This document shows, in pieces, positions 3,201 to 47,793 of a stretch of 64,000 bases of DNA. Where the stretch lies: positions 620,001-684,000 of the forward strand of contig NIVC01000099.1 of the NCBI GenBank assembly GCA_002269645.1, written 5' to 3'. The position numbers and the translations under genes are program-made. The stretch's first letter is position 1. Each line of letters starts with the position of its first letter. This DNA is from Macrostomum lignano (taxonomy: Eukaryota). Below the pieces are notes generated by a model. The model saw only the letters and a list, made by a program, of their open reading frames with translations, was not told the DNA's origin and made no database searches.

Positions 3201-6200
3201 CTCTTATGTGCTTGACGTCGGTAATGAACGCCAAGAATGAAGATGCTGAAGGAGCAAATGCTACGAGTGAAGAAAGGACGGCGTTTAATAGAAGAATGGC
3301 GGAGGTAAGTAGCATATGCGCTCAGATTTATCACTCACACATGGTTATTGAAAAGGCAATGATAACAAGCAGTTTTGGCACAAGCTAGTATGCAATATTA
3401 GCTAGTATTCTCACTATATTTTCAGCTGCGTACGAAGCTTGTCGAAGTGGTCGCCAATTTCAGCTTAAACTCTCCCGAGGATTTGGAGCAGACAAATGAC
3501 GTATTGAGGACAGCTTTCCCCCCTGACCGAACAGATCAGATTACGGTTAATGCGCAGGTAAGTACCTTTATTGCTGTAGCCAAGATACTTTCGGTGCTTT
3601 CCTTGGATACTTGAATCTGAATCTGTAAAAAGCTTATTTCACCCATTAAATGCTTGTCTCAGGAGCTCGGTGCTTCAAAGCTTCAAGAAGTTACGGATTC
3701 TTTTGGAAAATTTAAAGAAAAACTCCAAAAAGACGTGCAACCGCTTATGGGTTCAGGTAAGAGCAACAGTTATTCCTCCCTTTACGTTTTGTGTTATTAT
3801 AGGGTTAACAAATAGCTTTTCTATCGCGAAAGAACCATAAAACACGCAACACGAAACAGATATTGTGTTCACTGGCTCGAATATTTGGTCCGCATCTGAC
3901 GCCACTGCAAAGGCCAACAATGCCAACAACGAAAGCGCCTGCTCAAACTCAAGTCAGATAGATTGTCTTTCGACTACCCCAGCAACTGGAACCGAAGAGC
4001 TTAGCGCAAAAGTCAGAGGAGTAATAGAGTCTGTTCTCACAACTGTTGAATCTGTAACGGAAATTCTTCTCAACAGCTCGGGGTCCTATTCCATCTCCGA
4101 TTCCGCACTGTCAGTTCAGGGAGTTCGCCTTAATGGAAGCAACGATAGCGTTAGTTTTCAGTCGGCACTGGGTGACGCCAGTCTGCCACAGCTGAGCGGC
4201 TGCGACTCAGTTAAGGCTGTGTTCTCAGGCCGCAGCCCGTATGTGTGGCAACCGAAGACATCCGTTGCTTCGCCTGTCCTCATGATTGATAAGAGAGGCT
4301 GCCGCTCGCGTCGCGCTGCAGCGCCTTCCAGCTCGGAAAGTTTCACCTTCTCTTTACCTGCAACAGCTGTTGGCGAAAAAGCTGTGGTCAATGCTACCCC
4401 GACGGATCGGTGGCTGAGCTTTTATCACAGCGTTAATGTCACCTTTGGAGTCCTGGAGGTGACAGTGCTGCCAATCAATGTCAGCCACGCGCTACAGGTC
4501 TTTGTGCAGCTCGACCGCCTTCCGACGCCATTGGAGTATTTAATTAACGCTAGCCAAGGCTCGTTTTATCTACCTGCAGTTTCTAACGGTACCTATTTCA
4601 TCGGAGTCCAGCGAGACGGTTGCTACCGGGAGCCCAGCGGCGAGGTAGCCTCTTCTTGTCCTGACCCGAGCCTGTCCTACGAGTTTGGTCTATCTCAATA
4701 CGATTGTCTCGTCTGGGACGCTGTCCAGGAAATCTGGACGAAGCCTTCAACTGCTGGAGCTTCGTGCACTGTCGAAGCGTCCGATGTCCCAAATCGACCG
4801 AGGTTCGTCAGCAACCTCTTCGGTAGCCTTGGCGCGGGAATGAATGTATTGCCGAATCTCATCGATTTCGGCAAGCTGTTTGACAACTGGCAGGGAAAGC
4901 TGGCGGACAGCGCTGCAGTTGTCGGCACCGTGGTGGCTCTTTGGGTCATCTTCATCCCGATTGCTGTCTGGTTGCGTCGCGTTGACAATAAGGATAGCGA
5001 AAAGGTGAGACTGGATATTCTGCCAACATGCTTTGAACCGTTGATTCTTCGGAATTATAAAATTCGTCGTCAAAGTAAAAAGCAAACGCCTTTCTCGAAA
5101 AAAATTTCAGTTTAAGTATTTACCTCTGATCGACGATGCGAATGAAAAGTTTGTCTACAGGATTGACGTGTACACTGCCAGCGATAAAAGCAACGCTGGA
5201 ACCCGTATATGCCCGCTACTATCGGTTTCGGGTGAACTTCACAGAGAACCGCTGAGAGTTTTGTCTGATGGAATTTGACAGGTAAGATAACGATAGTGTG
5301 AAATCAACTGACTGAAACAGTGAAGTGAAAATTTATGACATTGTCAACTAACTTGTTTTTCAGAATTTTCAGCCGGGTGATATAAATCACTTCACAATGA
5401 CAACAGGGAAGCATCTGGGCGACATTCTCGAGATAGAATTTTCGCTTGAAGGACAGAAACCAATTTCTACGTGGATGCTGCAGAAAATAATTATCACGGA
5501 TTCGTTGTACAATGTCAGGTATGATTTCAGAATGATAACTTTGCTGGTTTCCTGATACTTGGTCAGCAAAAGTAATTTTTAATTTTTCAGTTACATCTTC
5601 AACTCATCCGAAACGATCCTGCCGTACCAAGAGCCTATTGCGATAGCATTGGCGAGCAAGGAACAGTTGGCATTCCAGCAGCGCTTTGTGAGGAACAATC
5701 TGTCGCGAAAGTTCCTCGACGATCACCTGTGGATGTCGGTAGTCAAGCGTAAAACTGACACGAACTTTTCTCGGCTGCAGCGATTTGGCGTCTGTTTCTG
5801 TCTGCTCTTCTTAACCATGATATCCAATGCCATGTTTTACGGTGTTGGGGAGGGGGGCCAGTCAGCGTCAGACACGATCACGATCGGACCGATCAAGCTG
5901 TCAGTCAACACCCTGTTCACGTCCATGCTGGGCGCTGTTGTTGTTGTGCCAGTTTCAGCTGCTGTCACTATTTTCTTTTTGAAGTCCAAAAGATCAGCAA
6001 GCAATTCCGCAACGCCCAGTTCTTCTCTTGAGAATTCAGATGCAATGAAAGAGTCCAGAGAGAAGTCGGAGAGTACTACAGAGGACGGGGTCTTTGATCT
6101 AGTGAGTAGTTTATTATCCGCATATACCGGTACTTAAACCCACATATTCACCCTTATTTCATTCGTTCCTAAATTTCATATCTTTGCCAATAGCAACCGT

Positions 6201-9200
6201 GAACTGCGGCACATCTGTAAAACCATTGCTTGACAGAAAAAAAATGCTTTTGAGGTGTCCAATCGGCGTTTGCTGATTGGTTGTAAACACCCACCCCAAG
6301 TCAACCCCCTCTGCACTGCACCCCTCCGCCGTGAGGTTTATATCACCTAGCTTTACTCAGCCTGCCTCACCTTTCTCGCGCTGCATGAAATTTTTTCTCC
6401 ATAGGTGCGTTTGTACTACAGATAGGTGCGGTTGGTACCATTGCTTAGTTATTTATTGAGTATCTATTACTTATTTTCCAAATTCATTCCAGCTTGAAAC
6501 CGGGATTGTTTATCGATCTAGAAAATCTGCTGATTCAAGGACGCCCAAATCCAAAGACTTTTCAAGTAACCCAGCCAGCACACCGCTGGTGCCACAGGTG
6601 AGCGAAATGCCGTCGACAGGATTCCAGCTGCCGCACTGGTGCCAGTACGTGGGCTGGGCGCTGGTTCTGGGCAGCATGCTCGGCGCCGGGGTCTTCCTCG
6701 TGTTCTACGCTATGCAGTGGGGCAAGGAGAAGTCCCAGCAGTGGCTTCTCTCCTTTGTGCTGTCGTTTGTTCAGACCGCGTTTCTAGTACAGCCGCTCAA
6801 GGTATGCAAGTCAACCTTTATCTATTTATCAAGCTAGTTGAGTTGTATTCAACTGTACGATCTTAGAAACTAAGCAAAAAATAACCACCGGGGAGCATTG
6901 TGGGCACCTTGGCACAACGCCTTCCGCAACATTGACCCACAATCAGTTGCCGAGGAAATTCTGTCCATTCCGCGGGACCCCTGAGCAAACATGACACTCA
7001 TGCTCACACAGGGTGTACACACTCTCTATACCTTGGGAATCGGCCCCCGTGGGTGCGAATCGCACGAAAACCTAGGCCAATTTTTCATACTAAGCTCAAA
7101 TTGAATGTGACCCTGGAATCGAACCAGGGCTCGCGGCACGGGAGTCAGATGCTAAGCTGCTCCTCCCATACGAAAGCTTAAGTCTCAACATTGTACAATA
7201 TTGAGGATCTCTTCTCTGACACCATCTATCCATCGTTTTTATTCAGTAGTTTCTTGCTCAAAAGCTCGCATAGCTTGCGTCCCAGACTTTTGAGAATCCG
7301 AAGTCCATGCTGTGATTGTGGCAAGGATGGCGTTATGAATAGGGGGTTATGATTAAAGGATTCAGCTAGGGTTATAGGGTTTTCACTCATTACGAGCGAA
7401 CTCAAGGTTGAACTCATTAAGCGATTAGTTGTACCATTTTTTGTCATTTTCAGGTAGCACTGATTGGCCTCGTCTTGATTGTGATATTTCGAAAAGACTA
7501 CGACGTTGAGAACTTCACCCTCATCCGAGTCAGGTACTTCAACGAAGAGCATCAGAGAGGTGAGCAAATATTTAAAATGTTTATCAGTAAATGTTTATCA
7601 GCCGCAACCGTTTATCAGTAGAAGCATTAAAATTATTGCTTTTTACTTTGACTTTTACTACGAGTTTGTGCACTTTGAGAGAACGTGCGCTCTTTGCATG
7701 CTTGTTGGAAGCACGAAGCAGATCTAAAGGACAACAACCAAAAAGATCTTGAAGAAACTCCTTGGAGAAGATCCAAGGACAGTTCCCGCTAACTTATAGT
7801 ATTCCTTGATTGCTCAAGGAATGTCTTTTCTATTAAAACCGAGCAACTCTGGCTAGAGATTGCGAGTGTTAGTTAACTACTCAAAAAGTGGTGGCTGCGT
7901 CTGTGTATTTATTGTCTGATATAGCAGAATTGCGTGCATTTTATTGAGTGCGGGTGAGGATGTGCTCAAGTAAGGGGAGTGGGGCCACAGATTTCGAACT
8001 GGATGTTCTCGAACTGCCTCTTTGCATGTAATATCTGAAATAACCACATTCAATTAGGCAGGCAGCTTCAAATGAAACAAACAATTTTTCAGAGGGCATC
8101 GCATTTCTATACGAACTCGAGGCCAAAGCTCGACAGAACCCGGTCCGCAAGGCTGCCATCAGCGCCACTGTGAAGCTGGTCCTCACCTTGCTGCTGCTCC
8201 TGCTTCAATACTGCATTTGCTACGGCAACATCGACCCTGGAACCTTCCGGCTACACGAAAGCATCAAGCAGCACTTGAACTACAAAGACCTGGTTGCCGT
8301 GGATGGAACTGCCACTGAGCTGTACAAAGTTATAAACTCCAGCATCTTGCCTGCTGTTTTCGCAGACTCCGCCTCGTTTCTGATCTCCGACGGATGCGGC
8401 TACCGTCTGAGCCGGCTGTCACTGCGCCAGCTGAGAAGGCCTCGCCAGCAACGCCAGTCGCCGTTCGTGAGCAGCACTGATGAAACCGGCTGCTTCCTGC
8501 CGGGCTGGACTGCCGCAGCTCCGTGCAACCTCTCGGCGTCGCCGCTTGAGCAGGCCTTCATGAACCGGCCTGACGGTGCGCCGTACTCGGGAATTCTAGC
8601 CGAATACCGAGGTGGCGGCTTTGTGGCCCTGCTGCCGGAAGGACTGGCACCGAGTCGAGCTTTCCTGGCCGAGCTGCAGCGCCTGGGCTGGTTGGACTCG
8701 TCCACCAGCTTGCTGGTCGTTGAGCTGGACTTGTTTTACTCGGACGTGAACCTGTTCACCGCGGTTGCCATGGCATCGGAACTCAATTCATTCGGCGGTG
8801 CTCACGCCAGCGAGCAGCTCCTTAGCACTAGGCTGTACCGCTACGTGGGTGCAGTGGGAGTCTTTGCATTGGTCTCAGAGATTCTAGCCGGCCTTCTATT
8901 GCTTCTGCGCATCGTTTTTCTGGCTATTCAGCTGCGAAACTGTCGCCAGTTTTGGGCCAACTTTGAGAACTGGCTGGACATGGGCGTCGTCATCTTTATG
9001 GTGGTCGCCTGCGTTTTCTACGGTCTCCGCACAGCCGGCACTGGCAGCGCTCTGGAGGCTGCGGTGAACGGAGGCCGACCGCAGCTACGCCAGCTGCTGC
9101 TGCTTAACGAATTCTTCTTTTACTCGCTCGGCTTCTCCTGCTTCCTTTTGCAGCTGTCGCTGCTGGGCCTCATCAGGTTCAGCGCCACCCTCGGCCACCT

Positions 9201-10209
9201 GCTCGGCACGCTGCGATCCTCGCTCAGCAAGTTGAGCTCTTTCGCCGTATTTTTCTGTGTCATCTTCTTCGCCTTCTGCTGGCTGATGAACCAGCTGCTC
9301 GGGCCGGTGCAGCTGCAGTTCAGCTCACCCCTTGGCACCATGTCAACTCTGTTCTCGGCGATGCTCGGCAAGTTCGACATGGCCACAGTCAGCCGCCATG
9401 GACTGCTCCCGAAGCTCGCGTTCTCTCTGTACGTCTCCTTCTTGATGTTCATTGTAGTCAACCTTTTCGTGGTCATTCTCAACGACAGTTACGAAGGGGC
9501 CAGGGAGCCAACGCAGAGCGGCGCCGGTGGCTCGAGCGACTTCCAGATCGTCCAGTTCGTTCTGCAGAGACTGCGCGACACTTTCGTTTCTAGTCGAGCT
9601 GCGGCGCCGAGTTACAAGGAGAGTAAAGGTAAAATTTCTGGAACTGAAATTTATCTACATGCAATATTCGGGATATGAACAGTTACACACAGTATAGTAT
9701 GTGCCTATCGGTAGTACCGATTTGTATTTTCCTATATCTTACGAGTATTTTCGTTGCAAAAATCTCACCTTTAAACGTGAAGAAATGAAGCTGCGATTCC
9801 GTTACGTTTATTGAAATTCCTTAACAGTAGCGCGCTTTATGTAAATGCCATTTCTGCTGGTCTGAATCCAATAGCTAGTTTAAGTTGTCTGTGATGAAGT
9901 CGTTTCCTAACCATCAACCTCTGAAATTCATTCAGACTTGGACGTCACCATCAACCGGCTGCACGCAAAGTTCGGCATCATTGATTCAATGCTCAGCAGC
10001 TACACTCTGGCGGACCGGAAGTGGGACAGCCAGATCTGCCTGAACTTGACGGGATCTCTGCATGGCGATTCGTGCAGCTGCAACAGCGGAAACAGCGTCA
10101 GATGTCGAAGGCACGACAGGCTGTTGAAGAGCAGCGATACGTGCTGCATAGAGCTGCAGCTGGAGGGCAGCAGACGGAACACATTGTGAACTGCTGCCGA
10201 ATGTGCTGA
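242..10209 (+). CDS. Polycystin-1-like (PKD1L family) gene: PKD/REJ ectodomain, GPS-region, TM1, PLAT, multi-TM polycystin channel domain; 5'-incomplete, with apparent reading-frame lesions
   Basis: Hand-spliced exons (GT-AG): ~242-2188 (frameshift near 2040), 2272-2438, 2541-2974, 3080-3304, 3426-3557, 3663-3756, 3860-5004, 5111-5281 (in-frame TGA 5276), 5364-5518, 5591-6101, 6493-6801, unresolved 6802-8057, 8058-9628, 9936-~10209. REJ-like motifs CVSNCAVKVS and GGNCTIEPREGIAMETKFRISC. PLAT motifs RIDVYTASDKSNAGT and HLGDILEI. PKD1-type DDHLWMSV...FSRLQRFGVCFCLLFLTMISNAMFY. Channel region YRGGGFV...LGWLDSSTSLLVVEL and FMFIVVNLFVVILNDSY. Confidence 0.85.
6877..7167 (-). mobile_element. tRNA-derived SINE in PKD1L intron
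   Basis: Minus strand has B-box GGTTCGATTCC in a tRNA-like head. Body shares TGTACAC(C)CTGTG..GAG and TGCTCAGG..CGGAATGG with the copy at 40035, and GAAGGCGTTG..GGTGCC with the copy at 33610. Confidence 0.65.
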
Positions 10210-12647: not shown

Positions 12648-18980
<6,333 letters not shown>

Positions 18981-19156
18981 AATTTAAACAAATCTTCTTT
19001 TTTGTTCGATAATGACGGGACGAATGCTTCTGCATTGCGTAGTGGCTGTGTTTTGTGAAACTCAATTTAGATCCGTGTTGTGGTTGCTGTTTGCTTTCTG
19101 CACTGCCGCTCCTGCTGTGGGTGGCGACTCACCCCGATTATTTGGAGGTGTGGGCA

Positions 19157-21321: not shown

Positions 21322-21513
21322 TCACACGAACCCGACCGACTTGCAGCTGCCTGCGGAGTCCTCGAACTCGACTCCGGCTGGCCTCGGCGAGAAATTGGCC
21401 GCTTGAGAACGCCGGCCGACCGCCGACGGTGTCGCTGGCGAACTTCGAAGGCAGCCGCCGTTGGCCGCGCCTCGAATCAACGGCGAATCGCTTTCGGAAA
21501 TTTCTGAAACACC

Positions 21514-21580
<67 letters not shown>

Positions 21581-24500
21581 GGAAGACAGCGAAGCTGCTG
21601 CTGCTGCCGGAAGCTTCCGTCCCTGCCGGCCGCTGCTGCTGCCGCTGCTGCCGGCGGGCTCAAGGAGCCGTTGGAAGATTTTCTTCTTTTGTAGTAGGAC
21701 TTGAAGTCCAGCTGTTGGGTGAACTCGGCCTCCTTCTTCTGCCGCTCGTATTTCCAGTTGTGCTCGATGACTGCGGATTGGAGTTGGCTGCTGCAGTTGC
21801 GTGTAAGTGTCACTTGAAGCTCCACTTGAACGGCCCTTTTAAGGTTAGATTAACACAATTTTCAAAACGAAAAGTTCTATTAACATCAATAGAGCTATAC
21901 TCGTAAGATGAAAGGTAAGACATATCAAAAGATGAACATTGGATCTCCCTAGCTTCTATTAAAAGCAGTAACAATTTTCGTTAAATATTTATTTTTTTAC
22001 TAGTTATTTATTAAATATTTATTTCGATATTGTCTTCCTATCGATTAACGAATGACGATGTGAAGCTGTCCAGAGATCAAATCCTTCATATGAAAGCTTC
22101 TTCCCATTGAATTCTGAGTAAATTTTGAGTAAACCCGGTTGCTCACACTGGTAGTTGGGGTTCCTCGGTGCCCACCAGAATCTCTCCCAGCACAGCAGCG
22201 CGGCGAAGAGCACGGCGAAGGCGAACGCCAGCACCAGCAGGTGCAGCTGGTTGGTGAAGAACAGCGACTTGGCGATGCCCTCCGGCGACTTCGGATCGTC
22301 GTACGGCTGAGGAGGCGGAATCGGAGTGACAGGAATCGGAGTGACAGGAATCGGAGTGACAGGAATCGGAGTGACAGGAATCGGAGTGACAGGAATCGGA
22401 GTGACAGGAATCGGAGTGACAGGAATCGGAGTGACAGGAATCGGAGTGACTAAGAATCGGAGTGACAGGAATCGGAGTGACAGGAATCGGAGTGACTAAG
22501 AATCGGAGTGACAGGAATCGGAGTGACAGGAATCGGAGTGACAGGAATCGGAGTGACAGGAATCGGAGTGACAGGAATCGGAGTGACAGGAATCGGAGTG
22601 ACAGGAATCGGAGTGACAGGAATCGGAGTGACAGGAATCGGAGTGACAGGAATCGGAGTGACAGGAATCGGAGTGACAGGAATCGGAGTGACAGGAATCG
22701 GAGTGACAGGAATCGGAGTGACAGGAATCGGAGTGACAGGAATCGGAGTGACAGGAATCGGAGTGACAGGAATCGGAGTGACAGGAATCGGAGTGACAGG
22801 AATCGGAGTGACAGGAATCGGAGTGACAGGAATCGGAGTGACAGGAATCGGAGTGACAGGAATCGGAGTGACAGGAATCGGAGTGACAGGAATCGGAGTG
22901 ACAGGAATCGGAGTGACTAAGAATCGGAGTGACAGGAATCGGAGTGACAGGAATCAGAGGAGCAGTGATGAGGCCGGGTGGCGTGATGCTAATGCAGGGT
23001 AAACTAGTAAAGCAGATTAATGAGAGGGGATGGCAAAGTCGCACGCAGAGGAGGCCTCAGAGCCGGTTCGTGCCCAAGTGGCTGTTCTGAGTATCCGCGC
23101 TCAGCAAACATCGCGGATCCTTTTCGTCTCGGGAGCAACACTTTTTGCATTGACGAGCAGCTCATTTCTTCATCTATTTAATCCTGCTCAGGCTCCGGAT
23201 GAAGCATGAGATGGAGGCTGCAACATCTGTTGCTTTCGCAGCAATTTCCGCTTCGAAGGCGAGCAATGAATGACGGGAATAAACAAAAACTGCTCAAGCC
23301 TCACTGTTGATTGGGTTGAGAAGCCAGTGACCAACCGGATTTTGCGGCTTCATTCAATAAGTTGAGTTGCCAAGCTAAACATGAAAGCTAAGGTAGCCTC
23401 GGTAGCTAAAAAGCTAAGGTGGGCATGGGAGATGAGGCTGCTAGGGTAGATGCAGCAGCTAAGTAGACCAGGTATAGTCAAGACAGCTGAGATGGACACG
23501 GAGTTCCAAGGTAGATTAGATAGCCTACGTATGTAGCTTTCGAAACATGGTAGCCAGGGTAGTTCAGGTAGCCAGGGTAGCCAAGGTAGTCAAAGTAGAC
23601 AAGGTGATCAAAGTAGCCAAGGTAGCCAGGGTAGCCAAGGTAGTTCAGGTAGCTAAAGTAGACAAGGTAGCCAAAGTAGACAAGGTAGCCAAAGTAGACA
23701 AGGTAGTCAAAGTAGCCAAGGTAGCCAGGGTAGCCAAGGTAGCTAAAGTAGACAAGTTAGTCAAAGTAGCCAAGGTAGCCAAGGTAGCCAAGGGAGTCAA
23801 AGTAGCCAATGTAGCCAAAGTAGCCAAGGTAGCCAAAGTAGACAAGGTAGTCAAAGTAGACAAGGTTGCCAAAGTAGACAAGGTAGTCAAAGTAGCCAAG
23901 GTAGCCAAGGGAGACACGGAAGAAAAGGTACCCAAAGTAGACAAGGTAGACAAGGCAGCCTATGTAGCTAAGTTAGCCCCTGACTCACCGCGTCGCTGCC
24001 CTGATGTTGCAGCCCTACAAGGTCCGCCAACACCCTATGCTGCCGGGTCACCAGCCAGTTGATGAGGCAGCCGGTGAGGCTGGATCGCAGCCTCGTCAGC
24101 AGCCCCCGCACAGACGGCCTCTTCAGCACCATCTGCAGCTTGACGCCGGCCACCTGCAGCGGGTGCTCCTGGCGCATGTGCAGGTACATGAAGTGCTCGA
24201 TCAGGGCGCCGTAGTGACGGGCGGCCCTGTTGCCATGGGAAACACCGGCAGCGTCACTGGCATTGGCCGAGGCCGGCGGTGATGAGGCTGGGTGGTCCTG
24301 CGGCGGCTCGCTGCCCGAGTGCTGCCAGGCCTGGCGGCCGAACAGCTCGTCCAAGGAGTTCACCGCTGGGTGAAGGGGTTTGGGGCGGGTCAGTCCGGGG
24401 AAATGGACGACTCAAAGTAGGACGGGCAGTGCTTCGTTCTTAGATAATCCTCGTTTCAAAATATTTCTTAGAAATTCTTAGAAAATCCGAAATATCTCAG

Positions 24501-27500
24501 TATCTCATTTAGTTCTCACTCAGTTCTCACTCTGTATCTCCCTCATTTCACTCAGTGTATCTCACTCAGTTTTCACTCGGTTTCTCGCTCAGTATCTCAC
24601 TCGGTTTCTCACTCAGTGTCTCACTCAGTATCTCATTCAGTTCTCACTAAGTTCTCACTCAGTATCTCCCTCATGTCACTCAGTTCTCACTCAGTATCTC
24701 ATTCAGTTCTCACTCAGTTCTCACTCAGTATCTCCCTCATCTCATTCAGTATCTCACTCAGTTTTCACTTGGTTTTCACTCAGTATCACACTCAGTATCT
24801 CCCTCAATATCTCCCTCAGTATCTCAGTATCTCACTCACTATCTTACTCAGTATCTCAGTATTTACCTAAGTGTCTAACTCGGCGTCTCAATCAGAATCT
24901 CACTCAGTTTTCATTCGGTATTTCACTCACTCAGTATCACACTCAGTATCTCACTCAGTATCTCACTCAGTATCGCACTCAGTATCTCACTCGGTATCTC
25001 ACTCAGTATCCCAGTATCTCACTCAGTATCTCTTAGTGTCTCTGTTTCCCATTTTGCTTCAATCAACTACCTTCTTCTTCTCGCCATTTTCCCGAGCTCT
25101 CTGCCTCCCAGACTCGGGCAGATGCTTCAGCAGAGCCTGTCCGCCTCCTGTCTCGCAGTTTTTGCGCAGTCATTTTATTTGTCTAATCTTTTATGTTTCC
25201 CAGACCGCAGAAGCAAATCAAGGACTGGCCTGGCAGCCAGGGAGCGTTTAGCAGAGAAAACTTTGCTGCTTTTACAATCCGACTGCGGAGCCTGTCTGCT
25301 AAATTTATGGCCCCGACAAGCCAAATACCAAAGTCTACCGGTGCAGCCGCTTACCGATGGGGTTCGAGCCGACTTCGTACACCAGTGTCTCCTCGAACGA
25401 GCCGTTCATCACCGTCATCTGCAGGTACCGGCCGGGGCCAGTGAAGGGAGGGGTTGGAGAGGCCGGCAGTGCTGTGCGATCTTTCAGTTTGCCCCGACAC
25501 GGATTCAGGGCTTCCAGGAATTGGTTGCTATGCTGGGTTCTTTGCGCGTGTAAATTATCGATATTGATGGGGAATCCCTTCGACAATATGATTTGGGAAT
25601 TCCCTCGACAATATGATTTGGGAATTCCCTCGACAATATGATTTGGGAATTCCCTCGACAATATTATTTGGGAATTCCCTCGACAATATGATTTGGGAAT
25701 TCCGTCGACACTATGATTTGGGAATTCCCTTCGCAAAAGTTATGTAATCCCTTTCACAATAGTAGGAAATCGCTTTAAAACGTTAACTGGGAATCCCTTC
25801 AACAGGAACCGCTTCATAATGGGAATCCATTTCGCTAGAGCAGTGGGGAATCCCTCTGACAAAAGTAGTGGGGAATCCCTTGGTTAATGGGAATCCCTTC
25901 GACAAGGATGGAGAATCCCTTTCGCAATAGTAGTAAGGAATCCCTTCGATAAGGTTAATGTGAAATTCCTTTCAAAAGATTAGTAGGGAAGCCCTTCGAA
26001 AAGTTAATGGGGAATCCCTTTTGCAAGATCAGTTGGAAATCCTTGGGTTAACGGGGAATCCGTTTTGCAAGAGTATTTGGGAATCTCTTCGACAAGGTTA
26101 GCTAGGAATCCCTTTATGCACGATTAATGGGGAATCCCTGCGTCAAAATATTTTAGAGAAGTGTCCTACTCAGTACTTTTGAGGAATTGAGGAGAAGATT
26201 CGAAGGCCTTTGTAAAAAAATATTTAGAATTTAGAAAATGTTTAGATTTTCAAAATGAAGAACAGGACAATTAGAACACGGAAACTAACATTGGCCTGGA
26301 ACAGTTTGGAGTCGTCAAACGACTGCGAGCTCTGGCCGAGCGCGGTGGTGATGCCAGCGGTGAACATGGAGGTGATCACCAGGCCGAAGCTGATCCACAG
26401 GAAGGCGAACAGCCTGCCGCAGATGGTCTTCGGCGAGCGGTCGCCGTAGCTGCGGGATTCGAAATCGGATGTCTGCTTTGGGGATCTCGGGTTGCTATGG
26501 GATATTTCTTGATTGGGGATCTCGGGTTGCTATGGGATATTTCCCGATTGGGGATGTCGGGTTGCTATGGGATATTTCCCGATTGGGGATCTCAGGTTGC
26601 TATGGGATATTTCCCGATTGGGGATCTCAGGTTGCTGTGGGATATTTCCCGATTGGGGAGCTCAGGTTGCTATGGGATATTCAGATTGATCAAGCAGCTG
26701 GCAGTTGCAGCCCCTCTGTGCTTGGGGAAAAACTTCGCCGTTGTAGGGGTTGGCTGCCAGCAGCTGACCTTAAATCATCTTCGGCTGCCTCGGGCAGCTG
26801 CGGAGCCCCCGGTGACCCCGGGATAGAAAACTTTCTCCACGCGACCCCGCGGTTAAACGAGTGAAGAATGGGCCAGGAATTCCCTTGCACCCTTCATTAT
26901 CCCATGGGATCCGTCACAGTTTTGGGCTGCGCACCGGCCGCTGCAGATTCTGCGCTGCACTGCTGAGGAATGCAGGAAAGGTGCAGGAATAGTAGCTAGG
27001 AAGAATAGATAGTGAGTAGACAGAGAGAGTAGACAGAGAGAGTAGACAGAGAGAGTAGACAGAGAGAGTAGAGAGTAGACAGAGAGAGTAGACAGAGAGA
27101 GTAGACAGAGAGAGTAGACAGAGAGAGTAGACAGAGAGAGAGTAGACAGAGAGAGTAGACAGAGAGAGTAGACAGAGAGAGTAGACAGAGAGAGTAGACA
27201 GAGAGAGTAGACAGAGAGAGTAGACAGAGAGAGTAGACAGAGAGAGTAGAGAGTAGACAGAGAGAGTAGACAGAGAGAGTAGACAGAGAGAGTAGAGAGT
27301 AGACAGAGAGAGTACACAGAGAGAGTAAACAGAGAGAGTAGACAGAGAGAGTAGACAGAGAGAGTAGACAGAGATAGTAGACAGAGAGACTAGACAGAGA
27401 GAGTAGACAGAGAGAGTAGACAGAGAGAGTAGACAGAGAGAGTAGAGAGTAGACAGAGAGAGTAGACAGAGAGAGTAGACACAGAGAGTAGACACAGAGA

Positions 27501-30500
27501 GTAGACACAGAGAGTAGACACAGAGAGTAGACACAGAGAGTAGACACAGAGAGTAGACAGAGAGAGTAGACAGAGAGAGTAGACAGAGAGAGTAGACGGA
27601 AACAGTAGACAGATATAGTAGACGAACAGAGAGAGTTGACAGGGAAAGTAGACAATGAGAGAAAACAGTAAACAGTAAACAGTAAACAGAGTAAAATACT
27701 GAGAATAGAGGTGAAGAGAAGTGTGACGCTCACGAATCCAAATGAGGGAAAGAAGAAACCTCGCGCTGAATGAATTTTCGGTAGAAAATAACAGCAGCAA
27801 TTCACCCCAGCGCGCAGGCAGTCCGCAGGCGCTGCAGAGGGCATTCATCCCCGGTTCAATGAGGTGCTTCAAGCAGGGTTGCCAGACACAGCAAATAGAA
27901 TGCCAGAATGCTTTGCAAAACGATATTTCTAAACTCACCCCACGGTTGTCATGGTGATGAAGGCCCACCAGCAGCCTTCCCAGAAGCCGCGCAGGAAGGG
28001 TCTGGGAAATTCCTGGGGATTTTTCAGCCGCTCCTGAAATCCGAGACGGGGGAGGGGAGAGGGGATGCGAGAGGCTGCGTTTGATGAAGAGGGAGCCGCA
28101 TGGGCTTGCGGAAATTGGCTGGGAGATGCCGCTGTTTCATGTCTATCTGAATGCTAATCAGTCAGTAAGCTGTTCTAACAGATAGTAAGCCTGTCTAACA
28201 GATAATAAGCCTGTCTAACAGGTAATAATCGTGTCTAACAGTTAATAAGCGTTTCTAACAGGTAATAGGTCTATCTAACAGTCAGCAAGCCTATCTAACA
28301 GTCAGCAAGCCTATCTAACAGTCAGCAAGCCTATCTAACAGTCAGCAAGCCTATCTAACAGTCAGCAAGCCTATCTAACAGTCAGCAAGCCTATCTAACA
28401 GTCAGCAAGCCTATCTAACAGTCAGCAAGCCTATCTAACAGTCAGCAAGCCTATCTAACAGTCAGCAAGCCTATCTAACAGTCAGCAAGCCTATCTAACA
28501 GTCAGCAAGCCTATCTAACAGTCAGCAAGCCTATCTAACAGTCAGCAAGCCTATCTAACAGTCAGCAGGCGCCAGTCCAGACCATGAGCCAGGCGATGAC
28601 CCCGGCGTAGGCGCAGGACACCAGGATGATGACCAGCAGCGGCCAGGCGTGAACCACGAAGTTCAGCTGCGAAATGCCGGACTGGTGCGACCGGATAGTT
28701 GGGTCCAGCCACACTGCGCCTGCGGCGGTGGGTGAGGTGCGCAGTGGAATTGGCGAATACTCTGGGGAGGGCTGATGTTGATTGAAATATAAGAGAGTGA
28801 CATTGACAATGGTACTTCGTACTGCACTGGTAGCGACATGTGAAGAGACACTTAAAATTGACACACACAGAGAGTGACATTAAGAGTGACACAGATAGTG
28901 ACATCAATAGTGACGCAGAGAGTGACATCGATAGTGACACAGAGAGTGACATCAATAGTGACACAGAGAGTGATATCAATAGTGACACAGAGAGTGATAT
29001 CGATAGTGACATAGAGAGTGACATCAACAGTGACACAGAGAGTGACACAAAGGGTGACACTGAGAATGGCATTGAGGGTGACATGCACAGGTACACTGAG
29101 AATGACATTGAGGGTGACATGTGAAGGTACACTGAGAATGGCATTGAGAGTGACATGCACAGGTACACTGAGAATGGCATTGAGAGTGACATGTACAGGT
29201 ACACTGAGAGCGGCTTCTAAATCGCTATGCACACAGAGTGAAAACTGGAGTGCCGGGTCGATAGAAATGATGAGGAGTGACAGAATTGAATCGCCCCAGT
29301 CAGACTTGTGCGCACAATGGGCCCCATTGTCTCGTTGCATTGCTGCTCGCACTTTAAATATTTGCCCAAGCAGCTTCCTAGCGAACGGCCGATAACTGGG
29401 GCAGCGCCGGGACCCGGGGGAAAGTCGTCGCAAGACGGCTCTGCCCCAGTGTTTCTCCTCTAAACAAAGTTAAGGACACGCGGATAACTGCGACCAAGGC
29501 GGGCGTGGGCCAGAGCCTGGAGCACCAATTCTTACCCTCATTTACAGACACCGGTCTGGTTCCTCATCTTATTAATTTGTCAAGCCTCCGCTTCGATTGA
29601 ACCCATAATTTGGTTTGCGCCAGCTTCATCTTAGTATCCAAGCTCGCAAACCAGATTCTTCTTTAAGGGCTCCATGACAGGCACCCGTGAGAATTTCAAG
29701 CCTGCATTGCGGGAGGGGGAAAGCCGAAAAATGGATAGGTACATGTACAGGTATAACTGTGGGTCTCCGACTGCCTCAGGCCAGGTGCATTGGACAAAGC
29801 CAGCTGATGACGCTGGGACTGAAGACCTTCGGGCAAGCGTGTCTGTTGCGATGAAAAAATGCATTTATCAGCTAATAAGGGCATCTAAGATCGATCTATG
29901 ATAGCCTACTCAGTGCAGTTAATCCACTATCATAAAAATGAGTTGTCGCTAGCCTAGGTTTCGGGTTAGGGTTAGGGTTAGGGTTAGGGTTAGGGTTAGG
30001 GTTAGGTAGGAGAGAATGAAGTGCAGTACCGGCGGATTACGACTACCGGGTTCCAATTGGCAAGGAGAGTGAGGAAGGGTACGTGTATGAATAATCTTTG
30101 TCTCATCAGGGATACCCGAGGGCTAGGGTTAGGGTTAATATGCGTTAAAATTAACTTACGTCATTTGGTCTCAAAGAAATCGTGAGCGTTTGTTTCTTAG
30201 AAAGACTCAAATCAGTATTAAAATCAACTTCTCCACTAAGAATGGACAAAACTCAACTCAACACTATCTGCTCATAAATCTAAAAATCGAATAATGCGTA
30301 TTCGAACTAGTCTAAAAGTACATTTTCAGCTGCGACATCAGCTTTATGGAGAGGAGTTTAAGCTTTCTGCAATAGCTGGGGGTAACCGAAATTGCCAGCA
30401 AAATATAACAAGCAGTCTGCATCCGCACTCGGTGGGGAGAAGCTGCAAAAACATTTCGCTCCGCTGCGGGCAGCGTGGATGTTTTTGCTTTTGCGTGCTG

Positions 30501-32605
30501 AACTTCCTACAGATTTTTGTACAGCATTGTTGACACCAGCAGTGTACAGCAGTGTACATCTGTGCATACCAGCAGTGTACAGCAGTGTACATCCGTGTAC
30601 ATCAGAGTGCATTCAATCCACACCAGTGTACATCCGTGTACATCAGGGTGCATTCAATGCACACCAGTGTACATCCGTGTACATCAGGGTGCATTCAATG
30701 CACACCAGTGTACATCTGTGCATACCAGCAGTGTACATTCAATGCAACAGAATTCCGTCGCCTCAGTCCAGTTGAGCAAGGCAGCAACAATACAGACTGA
30801 CCTCAATGGTTCGAATTCTCATTTCAAACGCGTGTGGAATAACTTTTTAATTTGAAATTCGAATTTTCAAACTGACCTTTCTGACTAAGCGGTCAAGTAA
30901 AGCGCATTGCAGCTGCTCTCTGCATCAGCCAATCAGGAATGTTGATGGAAATTCTTTATTGACAGTAAGGCTTAAGTATATGAATTATGGAATAAAAATA
31001 GTGGAAAAATATGAAACATGCCAACTTGTCTCGATAATTGGGTCGCTTGAAAGTTGAGAGTCCCAACTCGTGCATAAATTAAATAAATTTCCTGTCCAAA
31101 AATGGTTGCTCAGGAGATCCGATTTCAAGGCCTCAGACGGGTTAGAACTGGCGTGTGGGGTGCGTCGGGGGTTTCAAATATCGATTCTCGGTATGAACTC
31201 GGAAATAATTCAATCCTATCGTGGATTTATGACCCGCTTTGGGGAAATTCCGACTGTCTGTCAGCGGGTGAATTTTGAAAAGCAATAAATTTTTGCGTTT
31301 TCTGCTGCGCACATTCTGGACCAGTTTTTCCTTGTTTCAATTTGAAAAATATTCTGTTAAAATAAGATCTACTGGCTGTTTTTTCTGAATTCCTGAATTT
31401 GTTTTTCAAATTTTGGAAATAATTGATACAAAACTGGGGCACCGCAGTTCTGCACCCGCCACCCGCGGCGTCATGTCTTTTGCGCAGGTGTCAGGTGTGA
31501 ACTTCACAAAGGGCAATTTTCAGGGATGGATTTAGGTGATTCTCAGTGATAGATTGAGGCGACTCTCATTGATGGATTGGGGCGGTTCTTAGGGGCGGAT
31601 TGATGTGATGCTTAGGGGCGGATTGAGGTGATGCTTAGGGGAGGATTGAGGTGATGCTTAGGGGCGGATTGATGTGATGCTTAGGGGTGAATCGAGGTGA
31701 TGCTTAGGGGTGGATCGAGGTGATGCTTAGGGGCGGATTGATGTGATGCTTAGGGGAGGATTGAGGTGATGCTTAGGGGCGGATTGATGTGATGCTTAGG
31801 GGAGGATTGAGGTGATGCTTAGGGGCGGATTGATGTGATGCTTAGGGGTGAATCGAGGTGATGCTTAGGGGTGGATCGAGGTGATGCTTAAGGGCGGATT
31901 GATGTGATGCTTAGTGGAGGATTGATGTGATGCTTAGGGGCGGATTGATGTGATGCTTAGGGGTGAATCGAGGTGATGCTTAGGGGTGAATCGAGGTGAT
32001 GCTTAGGGGTGGATCGAGGTGATGCTTAGGGGCGGATTGATGTGATGCTTAGTGGAGGATTGATGTGATGCTTAGGGGCGGATTGATGTGATGCTTAGGG
32101 GCGGATCGAGGTGATGCTTAGGGGCGGATTGAGGTGATGCTTAGGGGTGGATCGAGGTGATGCTTAAGGGCGGATTGATGTGATGCTTAGGGGCGGATTG
32201 ATGTGATGCTTAGGGGCGGATTGAGGTGATGCTTAGGGGCGGATTGAGATGGTTCTCAGAGGCAGATTGACAGATTCGCAGGCTCAGACACTTTTGCAAG
32301 CCCTCCGTCCCGGTCTCACCCGGAGTGGTCACCACCGGCAGGAACTGGTGCTCGCTCAGCAGGCCAAACAGCGGCGCCTTCGCCACCGGCAGGCTGACAT
32401 TGCAGCCCCGGGTGACCCCGTCGCTCAGCAGGTGGCTCTCGCTGGCGAAGGCGCGATAGTGGAAGTCCAGCGGCTCGCCGCACTGCTGCAGGCCGGCCCG
32501 GGCCAGGTCCCAGAACACGCCTCGGAGCTGGCCGGCCACGGTGTCCGAGAACGGCGGGTGGCCGAAATAGCAGACGGTCAGATTCTCGCTGGCTGGCGAG
32601 CCCAT
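21322..32605 (-). CDS. Ionotropic glutamate receptor-like ligand-gated channel with K+-channel selectivity filter (GluR0/AvGluR1-like architecture), ~596 aa from the first visible ATG
   Basis: Minus-strand exons 32605-32320, 28719-28583, 28033-27939, 26449-26290, 25418-25355, 24365-23989, 22306-22149, 21835-21322 join in phase via GT-AG. S1-like CYFGHPPF...GVFWDL...[10 protein letters not shown]1 [23 protein letters not shown]. Pore [16 protein letters not shown]|[13 protein letters not shown]3 [23 protein letters not shown]2-like VMNGSFEE...GALIEHF. Terminal [20 protein letters not shown]. PolyQ tail. Confidence 0.85.
21520..21578. repeat. (CAG)n trinucleotide run encoding polyQ in the last exon of the minus-strand channel gene
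   Basis: (GCT)n on + strand; ORF 21322-21825(-) reads ~20 consecutive Q. Confidence 0.9.
22317..22955. repeat. 15-bp minisatellite (GGAATCGGAGTGACA)n
   Basis: Direct reading; starts ~10 nt from the acceptor at 22307. Confidence 0.97.
23547..23965. repeat. 9-bp-based degenerate repeat (GTAGCCAAG/GTAGACAAG)
   Basis: Direct reading; intronic. Confidence 0.9.
24497..25035. repeat. Degenerate ~12-bp repeat (TCTCACTCAGTA)
   Basis: Direct reading; intronic. Confidence 0.85.
25568..26140. repeat. 25-bp repeat (GGGAATTCCCTCGACAATATGATTT) decaying into GGGAATCCC-spaced units
   Basis: Direct reading; intronic. Confidence 0.8.
26480..26680. repeat. 35-bp minisatellite (GGGATCTCAGGTTGCTATGGGATATTTCCCGATTG)
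   Basis: Direct reading. Confidence 0.9.
27012..27596. repeat. 13-bp purine-rich minisatellite (AGTAGACAGAGAG)
   Basis: Direct reading; source of the [13 protein letters not shown] repeat ORFs. Confidence 0.95.
28185..28566. repeat. 20-bp minisatellite (GTCAGCAAGCCTATCTAACA)
   Basis: Direct reading; ends 15 nt from the donor at 28582. Confidence 0.95.
28868..29210. repeat. Degenerate AGTGACAC-based repeats
   Basis: Direct reading. Confidence 0.8.
29963..30006 (+). repeat. Interstitial telomeric repeat (TTAGGG)x~7
   Basis: GGG(TTAGGG)6TTAGG; a shorter run TAGGGTTAGGGTTAA at ~30123-30137. Confidence 0.9.
30540..30740. repeat. Degenerate CAGTGTACATC-based repeat
   Basis: Direct reading. Confidence 0.8.
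31590..32247. repeat. 23-bp minisatellite (GATGCTTAGGGGCGGATTGAGGT)
   Basis: Direct reading. Confidence 0.95.
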
Positions 32606-32797
32606 GTGCCTGTCTGTGTCTGTCTGTCCGTGTCTGCCTGTCTGTGTCTGTCTGTCTGTGTCTGTCTGTCCGTGTCTGTCTGTCTGTCTGTGTCTGTCTG
32701 TCCGTGTCTGTCTGTCCGTGTCTGTCTGTCCGTGTCGGTCTGTCTGTGTCTATCTGTCCGTGTCTGTCTGTCTGTGTCTGTCTGTCCGTGTCTGTCT
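32606..32797. repeat. Compound (TGTC)n microsatellite immediately upstream of the channel ATG
   Basis: Direct reading. Confidence 0.9.
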
Positions 32798-33760: not shown

Positions 33761-34321
33761 ACTACACCTAAACATCATTGCTTTATGGCGAAGACTTTGC
33801 ACTAAGATAGAGATGAATACATGTACGTATCTCTAAACGGCTATTAAATCTGGATAACCTAGACTACTATAGTAATAACTTACCTGCACAGCAGTGCAGA
33901 CTATATCTAGTGTACACACTCACGGCATCGCTACAGCCCACACAACTTCATTAGCGGCAACAGCAGTCGCATTCTAATCTGTTTGCAATACCTAGACGAG
34001 TATTTCTGTTCTGCAGTAGCCATGCCAAAGCAATTTGCATTGATGGCGGTTTCTCTACGCTCAAGATTACGAGTATTCTCGTCTACTTAGCCGTTTTTTA
34101 TTTAATATGAATTTCGAATTCTCACAACTAATATCGGATACTTTTGGCTGAGTACAGCCATTGCTCGAACGTTTTTGACAGACTGAGACGGCGGATGAAT
34201 GCAGATGAAGGTTGGGGGCGTGAGGAAGCTGGATGACTGAGAGATAGGTAGCTCCGAGGTAAATTTGCTAGGATGGAGACTAAGAGGGTCGACAAGGATA
34301 AGTTAGCCAAGATTAAGAGGT

Positions 34322-44629: not shown

Positions 44630-47600
44630 ATGAAACTTTTCACAGAGTAAACTGCAACCGTGAAACGACTATTGGTCAAGTTTCAGCTCGATATGTAACT
44701 TTGGCTCTGAGCAGGGGCGATTTTCGATGTGTTCCATTTAAAATACATGTGATTCCAAAATTCATATTGATATTCGAGTACAGGTACTTCTGCTTCACCG
44801 ATCTTGACGAAACTTTACACAGAGTAAACTGCAACCGTGAAACGACTATTGGTCAAGTTTCAGCTCGATATGTAACTTTGGCTCTGAGCAGGGGCGATTT
44901 TCGATGTGTTCCATTTAAAATACATGTGATTCCAAAATTCATATTGATATTCGAGTACAGGTACTTCTGCTTCACCGAGCTTGACGAAACTTTACACAGA
45001 GTAAACTGCAACCGTGAAACGACTATTGGTCAAGTTTCAGCTCGATATGTAACTTTGGCTTCAAGCAGGGGCGATTTTCGATGTGTTCCATTTAAAATAC
45101 ATGTGATTCCAAAATTCATATTGATATTCGAGTACAGGTACTTCTGCTTCACCGAGCTTGACGAAACTTTACACAGAGTAAACTGCAACCGTGAAACGAC
45201 TATTGGTCAAGTTTCAGCTCGATATGTAACTTTGGCTCTGAGCAGGGGCGATTTTCGATGTGTTCCATTTAAAATACATGTGATTCCAAAATTCATATTG
45301 AAATTCGAGTACAGGTACTTCTGCTTCACCGATCTTGACGAAACTTTACACAGAGTAAACTGCAACCGTGAAACGACTATTGGTCAAGTTTCAGCTCGAT
45401 ATGTATCTTTGGCTCTGAGCAGGGGCGATTTTCGATGTGTTCCATTTAAAATACATGTGATTCCAAAATTCATATTGATATTCGAGTACAGGTACTTCTG
45501 CTTCACCGAGCTTGACGAAACTTTACACAGAGTAAACTGCAACCGTGAAACGACTATTGGTCAAGTTTCAGCTCGATATGTAACTTTGGCTTCAAGCAGG
45601 GGCGATTTTCGATGTGTTCCATTTAAAATACATGTGATTCCAAAATTCATATTGATATTCGAGTACAGGTACTTCTGCTTCACCGATCTTGACGAAACTT
45701 TACACAGAGTAAACTGCAACCGTGAAACGACTATTGGTCAAGTTTCAGCTCGATATGTAACTTTGGCTCTGAGCAGGGGCGATTTTCGATGTGTTCCATT
45801 TAAAATACATGTGATTCCAAAATTCATATTGAAATTCGAGTACAGGTACTTCTGCTTCACCGATCTTGACGAAACTTTACACAGAGTAAACTGCAACCGT
45901 GAAACGACTATTGGTCAAGTTTCAGCTCGATATGTAACTTTGGCTCTGAGCAGGAGCGATTTTCGATGTGTTCCATTTAAAATACATGTGATTCCAAAAT
46001 TCATATTGATATTCGAGTACAGGTACTTCTGCTTCACCGATCTTGACGAAACTTTACACAGAGTAAACTGCAACCGTGAAACGACTATTGGTCAAGTTTC
46101 AGCTCGATATGTAACTTTGGCTCTGAGCAGGGGCGATTTTCGATGTGTTCCATTTAAAAACATGTGATTCCAAAATTCATATTGATATTCGAGTACAGGT
46201 ACTTCTGCTTCACCGATCTTGACGAAACTTTACACAGAGTAAACTGCAACCGTGAAACGACTATTGGTCAAGTTTCAGCTCGATATATAACTTTGGCTCT
46301 GAGCAGGAGCGATTTTCGATGTGTTCCATTTAAAATACATGTGATTCCAAAATTCATATTGAAATTCGAGTACAGGTACTTCTGCTTCACCGATCTTGAC
46401 GAAACTTTACACAGAGTAAACTGCAATCGTGAAACGACTATTGGTCAAGTTTCAGCTCGATATGTAACTTTGGCTCTGAGCAGGAGTGATTTTCGATGTG
46501 TTCCATTTAAAATACATGTGATTCCAAAATTCATATTGAAATTCGAGTACAGGTACTTCTGCTTCACCGATCTTGACGAAACTTTACACAGAGTAAACTG
46601 CAACCGTGAAACGACTATTGGTCAAGTTTCAGCTCGATATGTAACTTTGGCTTCAAGCAGGAGCGATTTTCGATGTGTTCCATTTAAAATACATGTGATT
46701 CCAAAATTCATATTGATATTCGAGTACAGGTACTTCTGCTTCACCGATCTTGACGAAACTTTACACAGAGTAAACTGCAACCGTGAAACGACTATTGGTC
46801 AAGTTTCAGCTCGATATGTAACTTTGGCTCTGAGCAGGGGCGATTTTCGATGTGTTCCATTTAAAATACATGTGATTCCAAAATTCATATTGAAATTCGA
46901 GTACAGGTACTTCTGCTTCACTGATCTTGACGAAACTTTACACAGAGTAAACTGCAACCGTGAAACGACTATAGGTCAAGTTTCAGCTCGATATGTAACT
47001 TTGGCTCTGAGCAGGAGCGATTTTCGATGTGTTCCATTTAAAATACATGTGATTCCAAAATTCATATTGATATTCGAGTACAGGTACTTCTGCTTCACCG
47101 ATCTTGACGAAACTTTACACAGAGTAAACTGCAACCGTGAAACGACTATTGGTCAAGTTTCAGCTCGATATATAACTTTGGCTCTGAGCAGGAGCGATTT
47201 TCGATGTGTTCCATTTAAAATACATGTGATTCCAAAATTCATATTGAAATTCGAGTACAGGTACTTCTGCTTCACCGAGCTTGACGAAACTTTACACAGA
47301 GTAAACTGCAACCGTGAAACGACTATTGGTCAAGTTTCAGCTCGATATGTAACTTTGGCTCTGAGCAGGAGCGATTTTCGATGTGTTCCATTTAAAATAC
47401 ATGTGATTCCAAAATTCATATTGATATTCGAGTACAGGTACTTCTGCTTCACCGATCTTGACGAAACTTTACACAGAGTAAACTGCAACCGTGAAACGAC
47501 TATTGGTCAAGTTTCAGCTCGATATGTAACTTTGGCTCTGAGCAGGAGCGATTTTTGATGTGTTCCGTTTAAAATACATGTGATTCCAAAAGTCATATTG

Positions 47601-47793
47601 AAATTCGAGTACAGGTACTTCTGCTTCACTGATCTTGACGAAACTTTACACAGAGTAAACTGCAACCGTGAAACGACTATTGGTCAAGTTTCAGCTCGAT
47701 ATGTAACTTTGGCTCTGAGCAGGAGCGATTTTCGATGTGTTCCATTTAAAATACATGTGATTCCAAAATTCATATTGATATTCGAGTACAGGT
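44630..47793 (+). repeat. 177-bp satellite-like array, left arm of the Foldback element
   Basis: Period measured directly (TTCATATTGA at 44761 and 44938). Confidence 0.97.

Follow-up and report, generated by a model that had tools for sequence, protein, structure and literature searches.

A gene of Macrostomum lignano predicted to encode a glutamate-receptor-like subunit with a K+-channel filter

Can an animal relative of the ionotropic glutamate receptors (iGluRs) carry a complete K+-channel filter? This question is raised by a gene on the minus strand (32605–21322) of a 64,000-nucleotide stretch of contig NIVC01000099.1 of the flatworm Macrostomum lignano. The whole stretch is called the window here, and all coordinates are positions in it. 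In reviews published up to 2025, the bacterial GluR0 and the rotifer AvGluR1 are the only relatives of glutamate receptors named as having a K+ filter (PMC12332018, PMC11479355). A preliminary description of the window had proposed a receptor of this kind, split over eight exons. Sequence comparisons and predicted folds indicate that the encoded protein is an iGluR-superfamily subunit reduced to its core module. In this module a first clamshell half (S1) is followed by a transmembrane (TM) segment (M1), a pore loop (P), an inner helix (M3), the second clamshell half (S2) and a fourth TM segment (M4). A predicted cytoplasmic tail comes after M4.

Structure of the gene

The locus is a genuine protein-coding gene of M. 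lignano. Eight minus-strand exons, from 32605 to 21322, were joined in one frame and gave a spliced product of 575 amino acids, with no frameshift or stop across the coding exons. Each donor is GT and each acceptor is AG. The in-phase joining of eight exons was thus recovered as it had been described. The features of the gene are as follows.

32605–32320, minus strand: exon 1, amino acids 1–96, most of S1; ATG at 32605
28719–28583, minus strand: exon 2, amino acids 96–141, end of S1 (PGAVWLDP β-hairpin) and M1
28033–27939, minus strand: exon 3, amino acids 142–173, M1–P linker, pore helix and TTVG half-filter
26449–26290, minus strand: exon 4, amino acids 173–226, (G)YGD, M3 inner helix and M3–S2 linker
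25418–25355, minus strand: exon 5, amino acids 227–248, first S2 strand, NGS motif with Ser233, and Glu235
24365–23989, minus strand: exon 6, amino acids 248–373, remainder of S2
22306–22147, minus strand: exon 7, amino acids 374–427, S2–M4 linker and M4, then basic residues
21770–21322, minus strand: exon 8, amino acids 427–575 and TGA (21324–21322), predicted cytoplasmic tail
Between 32319 and 21771, minus strand: seven introns of 376–3600 bp each

The spliced protein matched an M. lignano protein in UniProt (P0011) with an E value of 3.8e-221 and a full-length homologue with 4.9e-46, and Pfam recognized its pore domains. The gene is therefore not a chance assembly of reading frames. P0011 holds stretches identical to exons of the window. 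A second UniProt model of M. lignano, P0096, was found by the family profile. It is 93–100% identical exon by exon, and by its sequence it is evidently another allele or a homeologue of the window gene.

Exon borders were compared with these models and with other relatives (^ marks a border). Exon 1 holds the first S1 β-strand, the family-conserved Cys42, an FP/LPV motif and Lys76. It matched the paralogue P0001 in tblastn, and the same peptide is found in P0011 and P0096. Its donor is G^GTGAGA, in phase 1. The exon 1/2 junction (TTPG^AVWLDP) agrees with homologues, which read VLRTPGAVWLGP (P0001) and ESPGTLLI (P0012). The donor of exon 2, GTCTGG, is the weakest of the gene, and P0011 and P0096 use the same one. 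Exon 3 is bordered by TTTCAG^GAG and GTGGG^GTGAGT and is 82% identical to P0001 (tblastn). Exon 4 has the acceptor CCGCAG^C TAC GGC GAC and the donor AAT^GTTAGT. The phase-2 intron at 27938–26450, said to split the filter as TTVG^YGD, was found exactly there and divides the Gly codon as GG^C. In exon 6, a species-specific low-complexity insert is followed by YGALIEHF (with Glu304), a YG-type strand and Cys347. The exon 7 junction GSDA^PYDD is shared with P0096, which also shares the next junction as NPDYQ^FIEHNW.

The start of exon 8 had to be moved. It had been placed at about 21825, the start of a long open reading frame (ORF). The acceptor is instead CCGCAG^TC at 21770, directly after NPNYQ; this choice rests on the paralogue P0013 and on P0096, in which the sequence is NPNY(Q/K)^F(I/V)E(H/R)NWKY. 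The acceptor at 21824 (CAAG^TG) was rejected on the same support. The tail encoded by exon 8 has a conserved motif and runs of poly-Ala and poly-Gln; a (GCT)21 array was located at 21516–21579 with Tandem Repeats Finder (TRF). An extra S2 exon at 25178–25405 was also rejected, since it has no in-phase acceptor and the frame carries straight on from exon 5 into exon 6.

TRF analysis placed at least one minisatellite array in each of the seven introns, in keeping with the minisatellite-filled introns reported before. Because these intronic arrays yield long spurious ORFs, the gene is hidden in the ORF list. The G+C content was 64.5% in exons and 46.6% in introns. Intron 1 also contains an interstitial telomere-like repeat, (TAGGGT)x8.7, that is (TTAGGG)n, at 29955–30006.

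Pore, clamshell and ligand site

Judged by its sequence, the pore loop is a complete K+-channel filter. It has a WW pore helix and the filter TMTTVGYGD, and M3 has a glycine hinge. As read from the sequence, the hinge has the spacing of the one in KcsA. Over M1–P–M3, Pfam reported Ion_trans_2 (2.6e-15) and Lig_chan (PF00060; 35.6 bits, cut-off 30.8). The Lig_chan match covers M1–M3 only, and 11 of 12 family members also have it. The best PDB sequence matches were K+ channels aligned through WWAxxTxTTVGYGD. With KcsA- and Lmo2059-type two-TM K+ channels, the pore helix, filter and inner helix were aligned at E values of 1e-7 to 1e-11. About 140 of 157 family representatives (about 90%) retain the filter as T[TS][VIL]GYGD, suggesting strong conservation or selection across the family.

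The end of M3 sits at the place of the iGluR motif SYTANLAAF. The family consensus there is xFTAxLTTxL, which retains the T–A and L positions of that motif but none of the others. M4 is a hydrophobic segment (amino acids 390–413), and the Glu at its end (Glu414) is kept in 97 of 122 members. No amino-terminal domain was found; just seven residues precede the first S1 strand.

Homology of the clamshell was examined with hhalign, in which the animal family profile was aligned with a profile of 11 bacterial GluR0-like proteins that carry SBP_bac_3. The whole modules were aligned with a probability of 100% (E = 1.1e-40). The 307 colinear columns start with the first strand of S1 and reach as far as S2 does, and VMNGSFEE of exon 5 was paired with the bacterial VPGSTSEG. 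When the halves were aligned separately, S2 matched S2 (E = 3.2e-7, probability 93%), and the match of S1 with S1 was weak (E = 0.005, probability 7.6%). The crossed controls gave E = 0.42 and 0.1% for S1 with S2, and E = 0.03 and 1.7% for S2 with S1. Pfam detected neither SBP_bac_3 nor Lig_chan-Glu_bd in S1/S2, even at E ≤ 10, and isolated S1 and isolated S2 had no Pfam matches. Of the Pfam domains that had been expected, Ion_trans_2 and Lig_chan were therefore seen and SBP_bac_3 was not. Searched against the PDB, the S2 profile gave sub-threshold matches only (E = 0.018–0.23), of which the top four were all class-II binding proteins. At E ≤ 10 all matches of this search were bacterial binding proteins or the bacterial iGluR homologue 2PYY, and the ligand-binding core of a eukaryotic iGluR was not among them.

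AlphaFold models of the allele P0096 and the homologue P0012 were used as stand-ins for the window protein. In the P0096 model, the predicted local distance difference test score (pLDDT) was 87–93 for S1, 83–92 for M1–P–M3, 75–93 for S2 (79–93 over its exon 6 part) and 79–91 for the M4 helix; spurious inserts scored below 50. In the P0012 model, the pore and S2 were above 85. Foldseek searches of the PDB with P0096 returned ligand-binding domain–transmembrane domain (LBD–TMD) chains of AMPA receptors as all of the top 50 matches (E = 3e-7, about 565 columns, template modelling score (TM-score) about 0.40 on the target). With P0012, the top 50 were nearly all AMPA-receptor LBD–TMD chains and included two of NMDA receptors (E = 3e-9, about 320 columns). 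Global TM-scores of the models were low (0.18–0.42), because the domains of a monomer model are not placed relative to one another as they are in solved tetramers. The layout S1–M1–P(TVGYGD)–M3–S2 with a fourth TM segment, and its clamshell of the type of class-II periplasmic binding proteins, are thus both borne out at the level of prediction, by the GluR0-like profile homology, the AMPA-receptor fold matches and the conserved M4.

We infer that S1 and S2 lie outside the cell, as they do in iGluRs and GluR0. In the closest relatives, a hydrophobic N-terminus or signal peptide of 20–30 amino acids stands directly ahead of the first S1 strand, and Cys42 is kept in 108 of 122 members. M1 and M4 are each followed by basic residues, which, read from the sequence, fits the positive-inside rule. 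In addition, Nematostella relatives carry ectodomains ahead of S1 (see below). The window copy itself has no signal peptide or hydrophobic leader before S1. The Met that immediately precedes its S1 strand has a counterpart in the paralogue P0001. One short upstream piece may be a possible signal-peptide start.

33972–33935, minus strand: candidate 5′ exon MRLLLPLMKLCGL, phase-compatible with an acceptor at 32610/32609

A stop follows this piece directly, and there are indels or a frameshift relative to the allele behind P0096, in which the short ORF (33934–33982, minus strand) serves as a bridging exon. The piece could be a signal-peptide exon that has been disrupted, or an artefact of gene prediction.

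Ligand-site residues were counted over 122 family modules, with the 11 bacterial GluR0-like proteins alongside. No conserved Arg column was found among the 122 modules for the Arg that binds the α-carboxylate in iGluRs and GluR0; Lys76 is nearby in the window protein. The S2 Ser/Thr position is Ser233 here. It is Ser or Thr in 50 and Arg in 55 of the 122 modules, and Ser or Thr in all 11 bacterial proteins. The acid position that binds the α-amino group is Glu304 here, Asp or Glu in 102 of 122 modules and Asp in 8 of 11 bacterial proteins. Position 235 is Glu here and Asp or Glu in 110 of 122 modules, and is not acidic in the bacterial group.

From these residues, the cleft seems to have been preserved, though in a form other than the classical glutamate site. 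Since the S1 Arg is gone while Ser233, Glu235 and Glu304 are kept, classical binding of glutamate as the ligand is improbable. Because the canonical S1 Arg is not conserved, neither glutamate nor any other amino acid is supported as the agonist. We speculate that the ligand may carry a cationic group. Two types of ligand site occur in the family at the S2 Ser position, one with Ser or Thr (this gene, the corals and P0012) and one with Arg. Members of the Arg type more often have Arg or Lys after the S1 FP motif. The two types suggest that subgroups may bind different ligands.

Relatives in animals and comparison with known systems

An exhaustive profile search was run over 1.84 billion representatives of clusters made at 50% identity. 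It returned 450 representatives at E ≤ 1e-30. The best 150 of these 450 all had E ≤ 1e-68, were mostly 430–520 amino acids long and were matched over most of the profile. Coral members come from Montipora, Orbicella and Pocillopora (531–533 amino acids) and Stylophora (489 amino acids), and all are uncharacterized; XP_058947967 is a coral member of 531 amino acids. The description of a poorly characterized invertebrate family is in line with this, as the named members are all called "uncharacterized protein".

Members from Nematostella are 720–4084 amino acids long and have the S1–pore–S2–M4 module at the C-terminus. Ahead of it are ectodomains with pentraxin, laminin-G, fibrinogen-C, F5/8-C, MAM, FN3, TSP1, CUB and Ig domains. 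Fusions of this type from Nematostella vectensis are P0195 (XP_048579794), P0203 (XP_001623142), P0234 (XP_048584867) and P0176 (XP_048580338); several Nematostella fusions are annotated as "sidekick-1" or "uncharacterized". By their domain content, they are predicted to couple an ectodomain of adhesion or extracellular-matrix type to a K+-filter channel.

In a quick neighbour-joining tree, the animal family formed one group against bacterial GluR0-like proteins. The window protein was placed with P0012, P0175, P0183 and P0239, adjoining cnidarian clades. The largest subgroup is of the P0017–P0025 type. P0025 is a single uninterrupted ORF on a 47-kb contig (ENA ERZ26222911) on which neighbouring ORFs had no Pfam matches; its lineage seems to have intronless copies. 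The window gene, in agreement with the animal, intron-containing gene proposed earlier, belongs to a flatworm and has seven introns. The introns, M4, the animal genes that flank the locus and the monophyly of the animal family led us to reject bacterial contamination and recent horizontal transfer. In the literature covered, which included metazoan iGluR phylogenies (PMC6307864 and PMC12226733), no description of the family was found; this coverage was partial and an earlier description is possible.

Next to the animal family itself, the best sequence matches were GluR0-like proteins. GluR0 (Synechocystis slr1257) and its bacterial relatives share with the window protein the order S1–M1–P–M3–S2, the lack of an amino-terminal domain, the TxVGYGD filter and an M3 end of the form FTAxIT(S/T)xLT. 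Unlike GluR0, the window protein has M4 and a long predicted cytoplasmic tail, its gene is eukaryotic with seven spliceosomal-type introns, and its S1/S2 is neither seen as SBP_bac_3 by Pfam nor equipped with a conserved ligand-binding Arg. The reviews present AvGluR1 as an iGluR-type subunit of an animal that has M4 and a TXVGYG signature, and they discuss it as connecting GluR0 with modern iGluRs (PMC12332018, PMC11479355). It resembles the window protein in pairing M4 with a K+ signature. As described, it differs in having the full eukaryotic architecture including an amino-terminal domain.

AMPA, kainate and NMDA receptors are the best structural matches of the predicted LBD–TMD module, and they share the Lig_chan match and an M4 ending in a conserved Glu. 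The window protein differs from them in having no amino-terminal (LIVBP-like) domain and in having a K+ filter in place of the Q/R/N-type loop; SYTANLAAF is partly kept and sequence identity is 10–20%. Two-TM K+ channels (KcsA, Lmo2059-type) are alike in pore helix, filter and inner helix, whereas the pore of the window protein is embedded between binding-protein halves and is predicted to be inverted in the membrane.

Proposed function, alternatives and neighbouring sequences

On balance, we consider it probable that the protein forms a tetramer of iGluR/GluR0 topology that acts as a directly inhibitory ligand-gated K+ channel. Four subunits would form the channel, with the clamshell outside and the pore inverted when compared with that of classical K+ channels. 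Binding of a small ligand from outside the cell would close the S1/S2 clamshell. Closure would pull the M3–S2 linker and open the FTAxITTxL gate. K+ would then leave the cell, which would be hyperpolarized and so directly inhibited. Several points weigh against this reading: the weak S1 alignment, the silence of Pfam over S1/S2, the low global TM-scores, the missing S1 Arg, the missing leader with its interrupted candidate exon, and the general point that a GYG filter is no guarantee of K+ selectivity, as HCN channels illustrate.

Some of these points would fit a K+ channel whose clamshell is not gated by an amino acid. The clamshell would then respond to another ligand (an amine, ion or peptide) or to a partner protein, or would serve assembly only, and the protein would be no neurotransmitter receptor but a modulated leak channel or an adhesion-coupled K+ channel. 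The lack of a conserved S1 Arg and of an SBP_bac_3 match, the near-even split of the S2 Ser position between Ser/Thr and Arg, the family-specific acid at position 235 and the large adhesion- or matrix-type ectodomains of the Nematostella relatives all point in this direction. Against it, the clamshell fold is confidently predicted, an acid is kept at the S2 α-amino position in most modules, and the M3–S2 linker and FTAxITTxL gate resemble those of ligand-gated GluR0-like proteins; we regard this alternative as rather unlikely. A ligand-gated but non-selective cation pore, which would make the protein an excitatory receptor, draws on HCN-like filters of the GYG type, which discriminate poorly between K+ and Na+. 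It appears very unlikely to us, as the filter is complete together with its supports (the WW pore helix, TTVGYGD and the Asp after GYG) and is strongly conserved family-wide, and K+ selectivity is reported for GluR0, whose inverted filter is the same (PMC12332018, PMC11479355).

Two further alternatives concern the locus rather than the channel. The family could be real and the window copy a non-functional one, that is, a decaying or 5′-truncated homeologue in the polyploid M. lignano. The absent signal peptide, the stop and indels at 33972–33935, and the expanded low-complexity runs in the S2 insert and the tail speak for decay, but the eight exons are intact with canonical splice sites, all family-invariant residues are present, P0001 likewise starts with Met before the S1 strand, and the strong G+C contrast between exons and introns persists. 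Decay is therefore improbable in our view. The channel could also be part of one long fusion with SGF29, as UniProt annotates it. P0011 and P0096 both begin in an SGF29 Tudor exon (35605–35342, minus strand), 2.7 kb upstream, and join it to the channel exons. However, their bridges from SGF29 to the channel follow mutually incompatible paths. Both models include intronic pieces that are unknown in homologues and have pLDDT below 50, and both run on into unrelated minus-strand ORFs at 13.9–19 kb (13920–19039), which lie opposite a plus-strand kinase gene. SGF29 occurs in no other family member. The two models are chimeras, and a true fusion is scarcely credible. The channel sequence is thus already in UniProt, but mis-modelled and named after SGF29. 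The extra coding pieces of the UniProt models at 29298–29460 and 25601–25419, and the exon 2 acceptor near 28762, were rejected because they are absent from homologues, direct junctions restore colinearity with the family, and their pLDDT is below 50.

Beyond the single gene, the inhibitory ligand-gated K+ channel proposed here may represent an undescribed ancient clade of the iGluR superfamily in cnidarians, the flatworm and other animals. Its members would have kept a GluR0-type K+ pore, gained M4, lost or never had the amino-terminal domain, and acted as inhibitory ligand-gated K+ channels. This is possible, though we hold it short of probable. The large animal family, with hundreds of clusters, combines a GluR0-type pore with M4 and no amino-terminal domain. 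If the proposal is true, no living group would link bacterial GluR0 to animal iGluRs more closely than this clade, which would also form a new class of receptors for a transmitter or cue. A ligand-gated K+ channel that inhibits fast would add a mode of signalling that is not known from the nervous systems of animals. The origin of iGluRs would become directly testable, namely the order in which M4 was gained, the amino-terminal domain was gained and K+ selectivity was lost. The Nematostella fusions would hint that contact between cells, or the extracellular matrix, gates such channels or sets their position. M. lignano can be made transgenic, so knock-down and expression studies are feasible.

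The ORF list of the window is dominated by long minisatellite-derived ORFs. Other features in the window are as follows.

335–9678, plus strand: polycystin-1-like gene with large exons and PKD, REJ, Polycystin and PKD_channel domains
13517–15442, plus strand: exons of a Ser/Thr protein kinase, with incidental tblastn matches only
44701–47558, plus strand: array of repeats of about 177 bp (59 codons)
47792–50257, plus strand: non-LTR (long terminal repeat) retrotransposon ORF with a reverse-transcriptase domain, G+C about 65%
50114–51955, minus strand: array of the same kind of repeat
56628–58802, plus strand: ORF of 724 amino acids with a Shugoshin C-terminal motif at its end (Pfam, 5.3e-9) and an internal QQQDKPQQQ repeat

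The retrotransposon ORF lies between the two oppositely oriented repeat arrays. It appears to have been inserted into, or to be bordered by, an inverted satellite (44701–51955).

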